Assembly (NCBI RefSeq): GCF_006345805.1
Contig: NC_043007.1
Coordinates: forward strand, 60,326,001-60,390,000
DNA length: 64,000 nt
DNA from: Octopus sinensis
Taxonomy: Eukaryota
Direction: 5' to 3'
The notes beneath the pieces are model-generated. The model saw nothing but the letters and a program-made list of their open reading frames with translations. It ran no database searches and was not told the origin of the DNA. Made by a program: the position numbers and the translations under genes. Positions 5,962 to 61,166 of the stretch are shown here, piece by piece; the first letter of the stretch is position 1, and every line of letters starts with the position of its first letter.

Positions 5962-6124
5962 ATGGGGGATGAGGTTGACGGCCACCCACCTGAATATGGG
6001 ATAACACTTGAGGAGTTACGGGATTTAATGCAAATAAAAGGTGCTGATGCTGTAGAAACAATTAGCAAAAAATACGGTGGTGTATTGGAAATTTGTAAAA
6101 AATTGTATACTTCAACAAGTGAAG
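5962..6124 (+). CDS. ATP2B: PMCA coding exon 1 (N-terminus)
   Basis: Encodes MGDEVDGHPPEYGITLEELRDLMQIKGADAVETISKKYGGVLEICKKLYTSTSE(G), matching the PMCA GITLxELRxLM...YGGV..ICxxLxTS pattern. Donor GAAG|gtaaat, phase 1. Confidence 0.95.
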
Positions 6125-21440: not shown

Positions 21441-21635
21441 GTCTATCAGGAAATCCTGTTGATCTCAATCATCGCCGTGAAGTATTTGGTTCCAATATAA
21501 TACCTCCAAAGCCACCAAAATCTTTTTTACAACTAGTTTGGGATGCATTACAAGATGTCACACTTATTATTTTGTTAGTAGCTGCAATTATATCATTAGC
21601 ATTGTCATTTTATAAAGTACCTAAAGACCCAGATG
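21441..21635 (+). CDS. ATP2B: PMCA coding exon 2 (cation ATPase N-terminal region and TM1)
   Basis: Acceptor ctccctag|GT. Encodes [65 protein letters not shown]. Donor GATG|gtaagt. 195 nt, phase 1-1. Confidence 0.97.
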
Positions 21636-24863: not shown

Positions 24864-25106
24864 CTGAGGAAGATGTACATGAATCTTCTGATGAAGCTGG
24901 ATGGATAGAAGGTTTAGCAATCTTAGTAGCTGTCATTGTAGTTGTATTAGTCACTGCCTTTAATGATTGGCGAAAAGAAAAACAATTCAGGGGATTACAA
25001 AGTAAAATTGAACATGAACACAAGTTTAGTACAATACGTGCTGCCGAAGTGATTGAGATTCCTGTTGGTGAACTTGTTGTGGGAGATATCTGCCTTGTTA
25101 AATATG
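24864..25106 (+). CDS. ATP2B: PMCA coding exon 3 (TM2 and start of actuator domain)
   Basis: Acceptor tttgtctatag|CT. Encodes [59 protein letters not shown]...VGDICLVKY(G). Donor TATG|gtaagt. 243 nt, phase 1-1. Confidence 0.97.
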
Positions 25107-37685: not shown

Positions 37686-37811
37686 GTGATTTGCTTCCCT
37701 CTGATGGTGTCCTTATACAGTGCAATGATTTAAAAATAGATGAAAGCTCGCTGACTGGTGAATCAGACCATGTGAAAAAGAGTGTAGAGTGTGATCCTAT
37801 TCTCTTATCTG
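37686..37811 (+). CDS. ATP2B: PMCA coding exon 4 (actuator domain with TGES motif)
   Basis: Acceptor ttttacag|GT. Encodes [42 protein letters not shown](G). Donor TCTG|gtgagt. 126 nt, phase 1-1. Confidence 0.97.
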
Positions 37812-39426: not shown

Positions 39427-39570
39427 GAACTCATGTAATGGAAGGAAGTGGTAAAATGCTAATTACGGCTGTGGGCATTAACTCTCAAACTGGCATCATT
39501 TTTGCTCTGCTTGGTGCATCTAATCAAGATGACAAAGAAACAAAGAAAAAGAAGAAAGGTGAAGAAGGAG
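39427..39570 (+). CDS. ATP2B: PMCA coding exon 5 (end of actuator segment, Lys-rich loop up to splice site A)
   Basis: Acceptor ttccttcactag|GA. Encodes [44 protein letters not shown](GEEG). Two in-frame donors: AAAG|gtgaag after 39558 and GGAG|gtaact after 39570. This exon is absent from the ORF track. Confidence 0.93.
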
Positions 39571-40015
39571 GTAACTTTATATTTTTTTATGTAACACAAT
39601 ACAGCTTGCTTTTTTAAAAAAAAATTAAGATTTATAGATTCTACTGCTTTTTGTATGCTCCAAAAAGTACTTTGTTCCTGATATCTTAATATTTTTCAGG
39701 AAATACATCAGTCGAATTATATTTCTTTGTCAAAACTTTAAAACCGTTATATGGATGGATTGTGTATATATTGAAATTTGTAGTAAGTCTTCATTAAAAA
39801 AAATTGAGACACTAAGTTATTGTAATTGTGCAAAATACATAATTAGTGCTAATGGATAAAAGTTCATTCTTATCCTTTCCTTCAGGTTTGTTTTTATGGT
39901 AGTAGCGGGTCTCCATCATTCAACCATGAGGTTTTAGTTGTTAAATCAACTGAATTGCTTGCTCCTGAATTAATGTGTAAAAGATTGGGTATCCCATAGA
40001 CATGGGTACTATTAG

Positions 40016-47600: not shown

Positions 47601-49115
47601 ATTATAGTAATCTTTCTGCATTTTCTTTCTCGCATTAGTTATATAGAATACTTTTATTTGCCTGCCATCATGTTGCTTTATTTTTCTTCTATACATTTGT
47701 CATTTGGAACAAACAGCTTGCATAGATTCTCACTGCTTATGGTGTTTAAAATTTTAGATGAGTAACTTACATTTAATCATTGAGATGTATGATATATAGG
47801 TTTGTCCTTTTACTAGCGACATGATATTAAAATATAATCTACAAAAGCTCAGTGTATCAGTATAATGTTAACTTGTCTATATTAAAAGCTTGTAAATCTA
47901 GAGTTGTTTTAAATACAATATACTATAGACATTATAGTAAAAAACTATTACATCCTTTTCTTTCTTTTGGTTTACATAAATAACATATTTATCTAGCTGT
48001 TATAAATAAAGACTGAAATAATTTCTATGTGATGTGTAACTATAACAATAACATCTGATCTACTGTCATGTCATTTTGTAATTCTTATCTACATTTAGAA
48101 TTTTCTAAATCATACGTACCATCTAAATATAAGCATAACAAATTAAAAAGCATTTCAGATATTTTTGTTAGTTGAAGTGTCAGGCTGAGAATAAATATTC
48201 AAAGAATATCTCTTCTAAACTTTCAAACCACTTTCTATAATTTCACTTATCTCCAAAATTTCTTCAGTTATTTTGTAATTTTCTCTCTAATACAGCATTT
48301 GGGAGAAATATTTATTATGTGCACTTGCACATACACACAAAGTTTTGTTATACCTGTACATTTTTTAAACAAATAACTTACAAACAAGTAGTTCTTGCCA
48401 CACCAACAATTCTTGTCTTATATTCATCTTAACCCCAATCATCTTCTGATGTCATAGCTAAAATTTACTCTTGTAAGAAAATAACTTTCTAGAGAAGTAT
48501 AGATTTTTTTCTTTAGCAGGAATATTGGAACTGTTTCATAAAAAAAAGTCTGAAGTGTTGTAGAAACAGTTTAAAACCTATTTTCCATTTTGTAAAGCAG
48601 CAGCAAGTAATTTGGTATATTGATTTTTCACCTTTATATGCATATTAACAATGGGTTTTAATTAAAAATAGTAAATCAAGTAGTTTGCAATAAAATTACT
48701 ACACTATAATCCCAAAAGGAATAGTTAAATAAATACTTATGTTTCTTAGTTAAGATTATATTATAAAGTTAACCTTTTCCAATTTGGGCATATTTAGTAG
48801 TTATATTTATTGTGTGTTTGTGTATTTAGTCAGGCTGAGAAATATACTGTGCAAAGCAAATGGTATAAATATAAATGGGAATTTTATGTTTATCGACTGA
48901 ATTTTTGAAAACTTGTAATTATCAAAATTTTTTATATTTTGTGGCTTTTTCTTTCTTTTTTTTTTAAATTTTTCTTTTACTAAAATGTAGTTGTCCAAAA
49001 GGAAGCTGCCGATGTTTAAGTCATGTTCAAACGCTTGTTCTTGGATTTGTGACTTGTGCCAAATTTTTTTGTGTGTCAACTAATTGTGTTTTGCTGCTTT
49101 TATCTTTGCTTCCAG

Positions 49116-49151
49116 GAGCACAGTGTAATCCACCTGGACAAAATGTACCAT
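49116..49151 (+). CDS. ATP2B: Candidate 36-nt alternative (site A) cassette exon of PMCA
   Basis: Branch-like ACTAAT at 49079-49084, tract ttttgctgcttttatctttgcttccAG|, donor |gtaagt. 36 nt, phase 1-1, open in the PMCA frame: (G)AQCNPPGQNVP. No transcript evidence available. Confidence 0.6.
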
Positions 49152-50438
49152 GTAAGTTTCTCACCCAATTTTGTGCTGCCAACAATTGCTGGTTGCCATT
49201 GCCAACTTTTGTGCTCTGATGTGATTGGTTGTATATGTCTGTGCGTGCTTGTTATGTATGATAGCTTCTGTAGCTGCCGCTGCTGTTTTGACTTAACTCT
49301 TGCACTGTTTGTTGTTTCACTGTGGTGGTTATATTGCTGTAGTTGTTCAAACTACTTTGGAAATAGGCATTCTTGTTCACTTTTCCTTAACTCTAATTAA
49401 AATCTCATCTGATGAATGGAATATCCATTGACAATGGTCATGGTTTGACTTGAATACATCAGAGAAAAACTAAACTATCTACTTCACTTTTTTTTTCACT
49501 TCTGACATAGGGTTATGAAATCCAATTATTTAAATAAAAATCTATTTAGAGTGTTATTGTGGCAAATGTTTATGAAGTTTTTACAAAAAGGTTGCCTCAC
49601 TCTAAAGCAAATTAGATTTTGGTTGTGGAGTCACTACTCTTTGCAATTCCACACTGATTTCCCCCAGCCCCCTTTTTTTTTTTACTTTTTTTAGTTTGGC
49701 TCAAAGTCACCTAAAATAAAATACTTAATACTATTTTAAACATACCACCTGCAGTTATTCTCCAATATCAATTTGTTGATATGTTTTACTTTCACATCTT
49801 GTATTTCAAGAATGCCTTCTTTTGCTCCAAATTAATGATCTACCTGTAATCCTTTTTACCTTTCTGTTTATCTTTTCACATTTCTAACATCTTTAGTTAA
49901 TTTTCTTTCCTTTTTTTTTCTGATTAAAAAAAAACATCCTCATCATTTTAAGTATCTCTAAAATAAATAGCTTGATAAGAAATGAAATTAGAATTCAAAT
50001 AAATTAAGTAAATCACTAAAACTATATTTGAAAACTAGTTATTTATTATCGGTAAATAATGCAAAACAAAAGCAGAAGTTGTGCGTAACTATTTACATAG
50101 AATTCTGTTTTGATATTGTTGAATTAATAACAAGAAAACTAATTTTTATAATCTTGTATGTGATTGATTGAAATTAAAACTTAAGACGATACAATCTATT
50201 ACAGATGTTATGCATGTTTCAATATAAACGTTATTATATATATATATATATATGCATGTCCATCTATGAAGAATTTTCTAATTTAATGTTTCTTTAAGTA
50301 TTCAAATTATTTAAGTTTCTTTTGTTGCTACTATTTTAAGATACTCTAAATATCCTCTTTGCTATTTCTGGTACATTAAACATCTCTGCTGCTTCAACAC
50401 TCATTTTCAATATTACATATGTCTGCCCTGCTCTTTAG

Positions 50439-60482: not shown

Positions 60483-60582
60483 NNNNNNNNNNNNNNNNNN
60501 NNNNNNNNNNNNNNNNNNNNNNNNNNNNNNNNNNNNNNNNNNNNNNNNNNNNNNNNNNNNNNNNNNNNNNNNNNNNNNNNNN
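60483..60582. other. Assembly gap (100 N)
   Basis: Run of N; the true size is unknown. Confidence 1.
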
Positions 60583-61166
60583 GTCTACTACCACTCTAAA
60601 TGCTTTGCAATCGTTTGTTTTTCAAAGTAGTGGTTTTCTGATTGCAGCCCTCCCATGAAATCTGGGTTTGTGCAGCTCCCGGTGAACAGTTTTTGTGGAA
60701 ACTGGGTTCCCAAGGTGATCGTGAAGCTCTGCAATAATTTTGGAAGCTGTACTTTTGTGATCCTTTCTAACAATTTGCATAAGAGTCTAACAGTCCCCAT
60801 CTGAAAGTTTTGGTTTTCTTCCGGAGTTTTGTTTTGACAAAGAGGTTTTCCCCTCTTTCTCAAAGGCTGTCATTAATTTTGAGACAGTACTTTGTGATAC
60901 ACCAAACATTTTGGCTGTTTTCATTACACTGGCACCTGCCATATGAGTACCAACAATTTGACCTCTTTGAAAGTCTGATAGATGTGTCATTTTAATGAAT
61001 TTTAATTACCTTTTTCTGATGATATCTGAAAAGAACAGAAATTTTAGCAAAACATATTAAGCAACACTAATAATAAATCAAAAAACAAAAATAAACAAGC
61101 TTTTGACGGTTTTATAGATATTTCAAAATCAGGATACTAGGTGTTTCCATTATTTTGTCCAACCCC

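Follow-up and report, generated by a model that had tools for sequence, protein, structure and literature searches.

A 36-nt cassette exon, probably alternatively spliced, at the site-A position in the plasma membrane calcium ATPase gene of Octopus sinensis

Does the long intron that follows coding exon 5 of the Octopus sinensis plasma membrane calcium ATPase (PMCA) gene contain a small cassette exon at the position of vertebrate splice site A, and, if so, is that exon used, conserved and related to the vertebrate one? The question was raised by an earlier note, made from the sequence letters, which had proposed a 36-nt frame-preserving cassette within a 64,000-nt stretch of genomic DNA (the window, G000:C11:60326001-60390000; C11 is contig NC_043007.1). 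We conclude that the segment at 49116-49151, here called A1, is very probably a real 36-nt cassette exon that undergoes alternative splicing, that it belongs to the one canonical PMCA gene (ATP2B-type) that O. sinensis has, and that it is the invertebrate counterpart of site A. Exon coordinates are given in window numbering, which is continued past the window end where necessary; addition of 60326000 gives the position on C11.

The products of the gene carry the domains PF00690, PF00122, PF13246, PF00702, PF00689 and PF12424, that is, the P-type ATPase domain set together with the PMCA-specific C-terminal calmodulin-binding domain PF12424, as is expected of a member of the PMCA/ATP2B family. 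Their top homologues are annotated as plasma membrane calcium-transporting ATPase, and the best matches among solved structures are human PMCA1 (6a69) and PMCA2 (9gsd). Exons 1 to 5 can be seen in the plus-strand open reading frames of the window. Exact letter-for-letter mapping of RefSeq isoforms (P0130, P0137 and P0128) to the genome gave the exons listed in Table 1. When the open reading frames of L002 were inspected by eye, the next PMCA exon was absent from them, because the next constitutive exon lies 59 kb downstream: the intron between exons 5 and 6 is ~59 kb long and extends past the window end. Exon 6 is preceded by ttttcag and begins with AT (L005). A probe of 720 residues, a human PMCA1 sequence used for location only, placed the next conserved exons at C11:60425248 onward, and PF00689 and PF12424 gave matches further along this contig, in the same orientation.

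Two further cassettes, A2 and A3, were located within the same intron; all three cassettes are phase 1-1. A degenerate DNA pattern for ANEPEGN gave 0 matches in the window, since A2 lies outside it. The earlier note had A1 followed by the next exon. The placement of A1 in the intron after exon 5 stands, but RefSeq mapping shows that the cassettes A2 and A3 come before constitutive exon 6.

Table 1. Exons, cassettes and splice-related features of the site-A region of the O. sinensis PMCA gene (window numbering)
Feature	Position	Strand	Description
PMCA coding exon 1	5962-6124	+	163 nt, starts at ATG; RefSeq mapping and ORF
PMCA coding exon 2	21441-21635	+	195 nt; RefSeq mapping
PMCA coding exon 3	24864-25106	+	243 nt; RefSeq mapping
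PMCA coding exon 4	37686-37811	+	126 nt; RefSeq mapping
PMCA coding exon 5	39427-39570	+	144 nt; ends ...KKKKKGEEG + G, phase 1, donor GAG/gtaact
A1 upstream intronic flank	49016-49115	+	5 YGCY; UGC at -24..-22, -21..-19 and -9..-7; polypyrimidine tract that runs up to the CAG acceptor
ACTAAT, branch-point-like	49079-49084	+	its A 33 nt 5' of A1
Cassette exon A1	49116-49151 (C11:60375116-60375151)	+	36 nt, phase 1-1, encodes (G)AQCNPPGQNVP
A1 downstream flank	49152-49251	+	donor gtaagttt, 7 YGCY, repeated CCAAYTTTTGTGCT 14-mer at 49164 and 49202
Cassette A2	84397-84426 (C11:60410397-60410426; L004), outside the window	+	30 nt, xLANEPEGNI
Cassette A3	86333-86410 (C11:60412333-60412410; L004), outside the window	+	78 nt, NNKVNTADSGKKASHVSKAWLNKSS
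PMCA exon 6	98820-99041 (L005 4820-5041)	+	222 nt; encodes (D)SDPSNIATG...KEKSVLQSKLTRLAIQIGYAG; RefSeq mapping

Two possible donors are present at the 3' end of exon 5 (...AAG AAA G/gtgaagaagga g/gtaac), one with its GT at 39559 and one with its GT at 39571, both in phase 1, and either 39558 or 39570 had been offered as the last base of the exon. In the mapped isoforms the exon ends at 39570. Use of the donor 12 nt further upstream (GT 39559-39560) would delete GEEG, which is present in every isoform, and this donor was rejected: 20 of 20 cephalopod sequences spanning the site read KKKKKGEEG. A separate observation concerns the start of exon 6 (98810-98826; C11:60424810-60424826; L005 4810-4826). 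Isoforms X1, X5 and X8 (also X3 and X12) read ..F/V-SDSDPSN, a reading that can be placed on the genome only with an exon 6 that begins at 98814, 6 nt upstream, after a non-AG 'AT' (non-AG site 98813). The canonical AG at 98819 (exon from 98820) yields ..Y/D-SDPSN. The acceptor sequence is a tandem TCAGAT TCAGAT, and the O. bimaculoides protein reads SDSVPSN at this point. The mismatch is due either to a non-canonical acceptor, to an allele difference or to an artefact of the models.

The context of A1, read from the window, is ...caACTAATtgtgttttgctgcttttatctttgcttccag/GAGCACAGTGTAATCCACCTGGACAAAATGTACCAT/gtaagttt, where the 36-mer GAGCACAGTGTAATCCACCTGGACAAAATGTACCAT is the exon. Its acceptor AG (CAG) at 49114-49115 is preceded by the pyrimidine-rich tract ttttgctgcttttatctttgcttcc, and its donor GT at 49152-49153 opens a GTAAGT that starts at 49152. 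In phase 1 the exon is stop-free and reads G/AQCNPPGQNVP/+T. It can be seen that the 36-nt string first proposed was exact to the base, with the same phase 1-1, CAG acceptor and GTAAGT donor, and that retranslation returns the same peptide; the ACTAAT was found again where it had been placed, and the distance of ~9.5 kb into the intron after exon 5 agrees with the mapped exons. This ACTAAT is the putative branch point of A1. As the length of the exon is a multiple of three, the frame is kept with inclusion as well as with skipping, as in a site-A cassette. On inclusion, the junction codons are GGA (Gly) on the 5' side and TTG (Leu) or TAT (Tyr) on the 3' side. The 301 nt spanning A1 are single-copy in the 2.72-Gb genome, so that A1 is no exonised repeat; a genome copy search and a repeat check gave no repeat or transposon origin for it.

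Evidence for the use of A1 came from gene models and from cDNA contigs. In O. sinensis, RefSeq isoforms X1 (XP_036363419-22), X2, X3, X4, X9 and X12 contain GAQCNPPGQNVP and map to exactly 49116-49151, while X5 and X8 skip the exon. The annotated cassette combinations are A1+A2+A3, A1+A3, A2+A3, A2 alone and A1 alone, and the exon that follows A1 is A2 (T/TG, Leu), A3 (T/AT, Tyr) or exon 6 (T/AT, Tyr). Full-length open reading frames of 1198-1298 residues carry A1. The O. bimaculoides gene is also annotated with both forms in RefSeq, its X3 being without the 12 residues. For O. sinensis the evidence of inclusion and skipping consists of automated RefSeq (Gnomon) models. Since A1 is present in the public RefSeq models of the O. 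sinensis assembly, as it is in those of other molluscs, it is already known, and the exon itself is not new.

Both forms were recovered as assembled cDNAs in decapodiforms. Logan contigs L010 (SRR5319790) and L011 (SRR8281694) contain A1, and L015 (SRR8281689) and L016 (SRR8281665) are without it; all four derive from decapodiform RNA-seq assemblies, of runs with neighbouring accession numbers. L011 and L015, from a cuttlefish-like species, show 99.9% identity and differ by exactly 36 nt at the GGAG/TGCT junction, the difference being located at ...GAAGAAGGAG/TGCTTGCT. A second decapodiform species likewise has an A1 form, GMQSNPPGQTVP (L012, L013; P0145), and a skipping form (P0010). Inclusion and skipping mRNAs are therefore seen within one species (L011/L015), and as models in both Octopus species. 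The RefSeq isoforms and the decapodiform cDNAs bear out the proposal of a frame-preserving cassette at PMCA site A.

Conservation in other coleoids, on which the earlier note had made its proposal depend, was found in Argonauta (GAQSNPPGQNVP; Argonauta hians isoform X8) and in two decapodiforms, a cuttlefish (GLQSNPPGQTVP) and the second species mentioned above. Among the cephalopod PMCAs retrieved by searching proteins around site A, that of the cuttlefish Acanthosepion pharaonis reads ...GEEGGLQSNPPGQTVPLLAIEPEGTID..., and O. bimaculoides X3 and a Logan transcript are without the 12 residues. The Argonauta and cuttlefish genes extend over more than 100 kb. The octopus and cuttlefish A1 exons are identical at 30 of 36 nt, and at 25 of the last 26. 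Along the whole gene, 42% (399/942) of the codons that encode the same residue in octopus and cuttlefish differ silently, whereas for internal same-residue codons of A1 plus A2 the figure is 0 of 15 (P ~3e-4); the sole silent change in the two cassettes falls in the junction Gly codon.

Similar inserts were found far outside the cephalopods. Oysters have the isoform pair GEEGNG/GTRTNTAGQNTP/LLSSDAD and GEEGNG/VLSSDAD, and Babylonia has the pair GHRKNNHGQAEP/LLSNEAGG and VLSNEAGG. The insert is GTRPNTAGQNVP in scallop and GSQTNTAGQTVP in Mytilus; an optional insert of 12 residues also occurs in Haliotis, Gigantopelta, Pomacea and Littorina, and the nemertean Tubulanus reads ..TPNNPGQSVP/LLSSEVD. 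The consensus of the insert in cephalopods, bivalves, gastropods and nemerteans is G-x3-N-x2-G-Q-x2-P. At the level of genomic exons, the comparison outside Octopus was made with the limpet Patella vulgata (L014). Patella exon 5 ends ...ACT G/gtaagt in phase 1. The Patella orthologue of A1, GTCCCAGACCAAACACCCTAGGACAGAATACACCAT, is 36 nt long and phase 1-1; it ends CCAT/gtaagttt, with the same 8 nt of donor sequence as in octopus, and has an ACTAAT upstream at a similar distance. The Patella orthologue of A2 has 30 nt and the same ttattag/TGCT...G/gtatgt context as in octopus. A3 was seen in Octopus models only. The insert had been thought to be the octopus gene's own; the isoform pairs and the Patella exon show instead that it is common to Mollusca and Nemertea. 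On this sequence comparison A1 and A2 are ancient exons common to cephalopods, gastropods, bivalves and nemerteans.

The junction behaves in the same manner across these animals. Inclusion of A1 before A2 changes the junction codon from Val (G/TG) to Leu (T/TG) and gives P-L-L-x-x-[DE]. Isoform pairs of oyster, mussel, Babylonia and cuttlefish show this Val-to-Leu switch as well, and the automated mollusc RefSeq/Gnomon PMCA models of O. sinensis, O. bimaculoides, Magallana/Crassostrea, Haliotis, Patella and Babylonia are alike in having the optional 12-residue insert together with this switch. The P-L-L that follows inclusion could be a conserved dileucine-like signal. Other small optional segments lie beside the 36-nt cassette in several molluscs, namely VTVVAYR/VTVVSYK on its 5' side in oysters and scallops, SSRNFEH on its 3' side in Ostrea, and PVDVKLIAVT in Haliotis. 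Such additional tiny segments indicate that site A, across molluscs, is a hot-spot with several microexons.

How does the octopus region compare with that of vertebrates? A1 sits between KKKKKGEEG and ...KEKSVLQSKLTRLAIQIGYAG, which is the position of site A. The Lys-rich stretch aligns with residues 296-308 of human PMCA1 and 300-311 of PMCA2, and the alignment resumes near KEKSVLQ; A1, A2 and A3 fall in the unalignable linker between these two points (against 6a69 and 9gsd). At this same place fragments of vertebrate PMCA4 x and z differ by exactly 12 residues, KKKK/GKKQGVPENRNK/AKTQDGVALEIQPL versus KKKK/AKTQDG... The vertebrate site-A 'x' exon has 36 nt in ATP2B4 and 39-42 nt in ATP2B1-3. 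The octopus A1 thus resembles site A of ATP2B4 (x/z) in being a 36-nt frame-preserving cassette whose 12 residues come immediately behind the Lys-rich stretch that follows SQTGIIFxLLG, in lying upstream of the KKEKSVLQGKLT acidic-phospholipid-binding region (before TM3), and in its opening Gly junction codon. The peptides, however, are unrelated, the vertebrate GKKQGVPENRNK being basic and the octopus GAQCNPPGQNVP uncharged, and the vertebrate ATP2B4 gene has one cassette where octopus has three. The earlier remark that the octopus peptide is unlike the mammalian ones can be kept and extended, because neither it nor the oyster GTRTNTAGQNTP has recognisable similarity to the vertebrate insert.

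Site A of ATP2B2 (PMCA2 w/x/y/z) offers a second comparison, as in both genes three small cassettes are combined in the same linker. The cassettes have 36, 30 and 78 nt in octopus, against sizes of reportedly 33, 60 and 42 nt in PMCA2, and are without sequence similarity to them. The optional residues come to 48 in octopus (12+10+26) and to 45 in PMCA2w (PMC5641333). The site-A inserts of PMCA2 have 0, 14, 31 or 45 residues, and in mammals apical versus basolateral targeting depends on insert length (PMC5641333); mammalian PMCA2 is the only pump for which the long insert is known to direct apical targeting.

The lophotrochozoan 36-nt cassette may have arisen independently of the vertebrate site-A exons, by convergence on alternative microexons in an unstructured linker that tolerates insertions and deletions, and we lean slightly towards this explanation. 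It agrees with the dissimilar peptides just described, with the different optional segment that arthropods have at site A (EAKKQRKK..GDSGEELIDANPNKQ), and with the annelid Capitella and the brachiopod Lingula, for which the sequences retrieved were of the insert-free form only. It is opposed by the length, which equals that of the PMCA4 exon (36 nt), by the shared place after a Lys-rich run and before an acidic ..EP/QP..EG.ID segment, and by the Gly junction codon that opens both inserts, in place of the Ala or Val found on skipping. This difference at the junction is compatible with a phase 1 common to both, behind a G that ends the preceding exon, the vertebrate phase being deduced rather than read from DNA. 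That A1 is the protostome orthologue of the vertebrate 'x' exon, so that site-A splicing predates the protostome-deuterostome split, is put forward tentatively and as the doubtful proposal it is. If it held, A1 would be among the oldest conserved alternative microexons, and the conserved Val-to-Leu recoding (P-L-L) would belong to an old switch in sorting or regulation.

Whatever its origin, A1 has the surroundings of a regulated exon. Within 100 nt on either side there are 12 YGCY motifs, against a background of 1.58 +/- 1.46 in windows of the same intron, of which 0.08% reach 12. Two copies of the CCAAYTTTTGTGCT 14-mer lie 38 nt apart just 3' of A1, and repeated UUUUGUGCU elements accompany the YGCY and UGC motifs. 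The last base of the exon is T instead of the usual G, which implies weaker pairing with U1. No unusually stable local RNA fold was found at A1 (z = +1.2), and no Rfam family within the window. A1 has the structural features of a regulated microexon: it is short and a multiple of three, has UGC/YGCY motifs beside its splice sites and is highly conserved in nucleotide sequence. Motif-rich flanks together with frozen silent sites would be the profile of an exon under trans-acting control, and MBNL-, SRRM- or CELF-like proteins are candidate regulators. The UGC/YGCY motifs are missing from the upstream flank in Patella, which makes their role in A1 uncertain. Compared with neural and other regulated microexons (SRRM/eMIC-, MBNL- or RBFOX-dependent), A1 is similar in being short, 3n, frame-preserving and located in a disordered surface linker, and in its strong nucleotide conservation, its UGC at -9..-7 and the dense YGCY of both flanks. 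It differs in that its UGC motifs are not kept in Patella and that, at 36 nt, it exceeds the classical upper limit for microexons of 27 nt. A GCATG (RBFOX-like) element was also noticed ~30 nt 3' of A2.

It might be argued that A1 is in effect constitutive, or always skipped, in octopus, that the alternative RefSeq isoforms are combinatorial artefacts of modelling, and that alternative use is found in other lineages only. Protein searches aimed at partial octopus transcripts recovered no octopus transcript fragments or contigs, and several RefSeq models need the non-AG acceptor at exon 6, a sign that some of the models are not clean. Against these points, independent annotation of O. sinensis and of O. 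bimaculoides gives both forms, both occur as assembled cDNAs in two decapodiform species, use is optional across molluscs, and strong silent-site constraint with motif-rich flanks is typical of regulated exons. We consider this explanation improbable.

Could the splice signals of A1 have arisen by chance? The 59-kb intron was searched for segments of 9-120 nt, divisible by three and open in phase 1, that follow a YAG acceptor with at least 70% pyrimidines upstream of it and are followed by a GTRAGT donor. A1 was the sole match to these strict criteria, and there were 0 matches on the opposite strand of the intron. In 200 first-order Markov simulations of the intron the mean number of matches was 0.45, with at least one in 36%, and relaxed criteria gave 25 candidates in the real intron, 22 of them without support. 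The splice pattern of A1 by itself is within chance and is suggestive rather than decisive; because it is expected in ~36% of such introns, the proof of A1 rests on homologues and transcripts. An exon-like segment with good splice signals and an open frame that is never spliced in would agree with these simulations and with the unsupported candidates. It is refuted, and retains next to no probability, by the exact coincidence of A1 with RefSeq CDS exons, by the same peptide in cDNA contigs of two decapodiform species, by an orthologous limpet exon that agrees in length, phase and 3' end, and by the constraint on silent sites.

A last concern, raised with the original proposal, was that A1 ends in T, so that a following AA, AG or GA would give a stop and inclusion would lead to nonsense-mediated decay; this is likewise refuted and close to impossible, because the three possible downstream exons begin with TG (A2) or AT (A3 and exon 6) and give Leu or Tyr, besides which the length of A1 is 3n and full-length open reading frames include it.

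We return to A1 as an alternatively spliced cassette of site A and to what it may do. A1 is the first of three phase 1-1 cassettes that lie between exon 5 and the one encoding the KEKSVLQSKLTRLAIQIG region. Its inclusion adds 12 uncharged residues, rich in Gly, Pro, Asn and Gln, to the cytosolic linker that leads to TM3; the insert lands behind the Lys-rich stretch and ahead of the acidic stretch LANEPEGNID, and the junction codon after it is recoded from Val to Leu or Tyr. In the mechanism that we propose, different combinations of A1, A2 and A3 would vary the linker by 0-48 residues, 12 of them from A1. The silent-site constraint on A1 and A2 in coleoids is what would be expected if inclusion were regulated through the sequence of the exons themselves and their YGCY/UGC-rich flanks. 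By analogy with mammalian PMCAs, variation of linker length may tune membrane targeting, the control exerted by acidic lipids and calmodulin, or both. The rule that ties apical targeting to insert size, drawn from mammalian PMCA2 (PMC5641333), may not hold in octopus.

These results bear on how molluscan PMCAs are read. Site A is a multi-cassette splicing hot-spot in molluscs, like that of mammalian PMCA2, in which A1 (36 nt) and A2 (30 nt) have kept length, phase and splice-site context from limpet to octopus, with silent sites frozen in coleoids. In work on mollusc calcification (PMC5641333, PMC6987452), apical targeting is deduced from a 'site-A insert' that is taken to be fixed. In these two mollusc PMCA papers the alternative microexon is not described, the site-A region being presented, by comparison with human PMCA2z, as an invariable insert; the inference of targeting should allow for alternative splicing of site A. 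No description of cephalopod PMCA microexons was found in the literature searched, and the conservation across molluscs and nemerteans, with its silent-site constraint, may be undescribed. Molluscan site A also offers a tractable system for asking whether site-A splicing is ancestral to bilaterians.

Some further features of the locus were recorded. The large intron is rich in (TA/CA)n microsatellites and contains a 100-N assembly gap (window 60483-60582). Beside the gap is a Tc1/mariner-like transposon remnant on the minus strand (60790-61005), in which an ORF fragment matches HTH domains of the homeodomain-like and Sleeping-Beauty-type transposase kinds (HTH_23, 7.6e-7; HTH_SB, 1.2e-5). Elsewhere in the assembly, the minus strand of a 230-kb unplaced contig (C8851:92351-95470, G000; L017) carries a divergent, intron-poor PMCA-like sequence with in-frame stops. 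It is near-collinear with the PMCA of the window over ~3.3 kb, with 38-76% protein identity depending on the segment, and could represent a second paralogue of PMCA, a retrogene or else a pseudogene.
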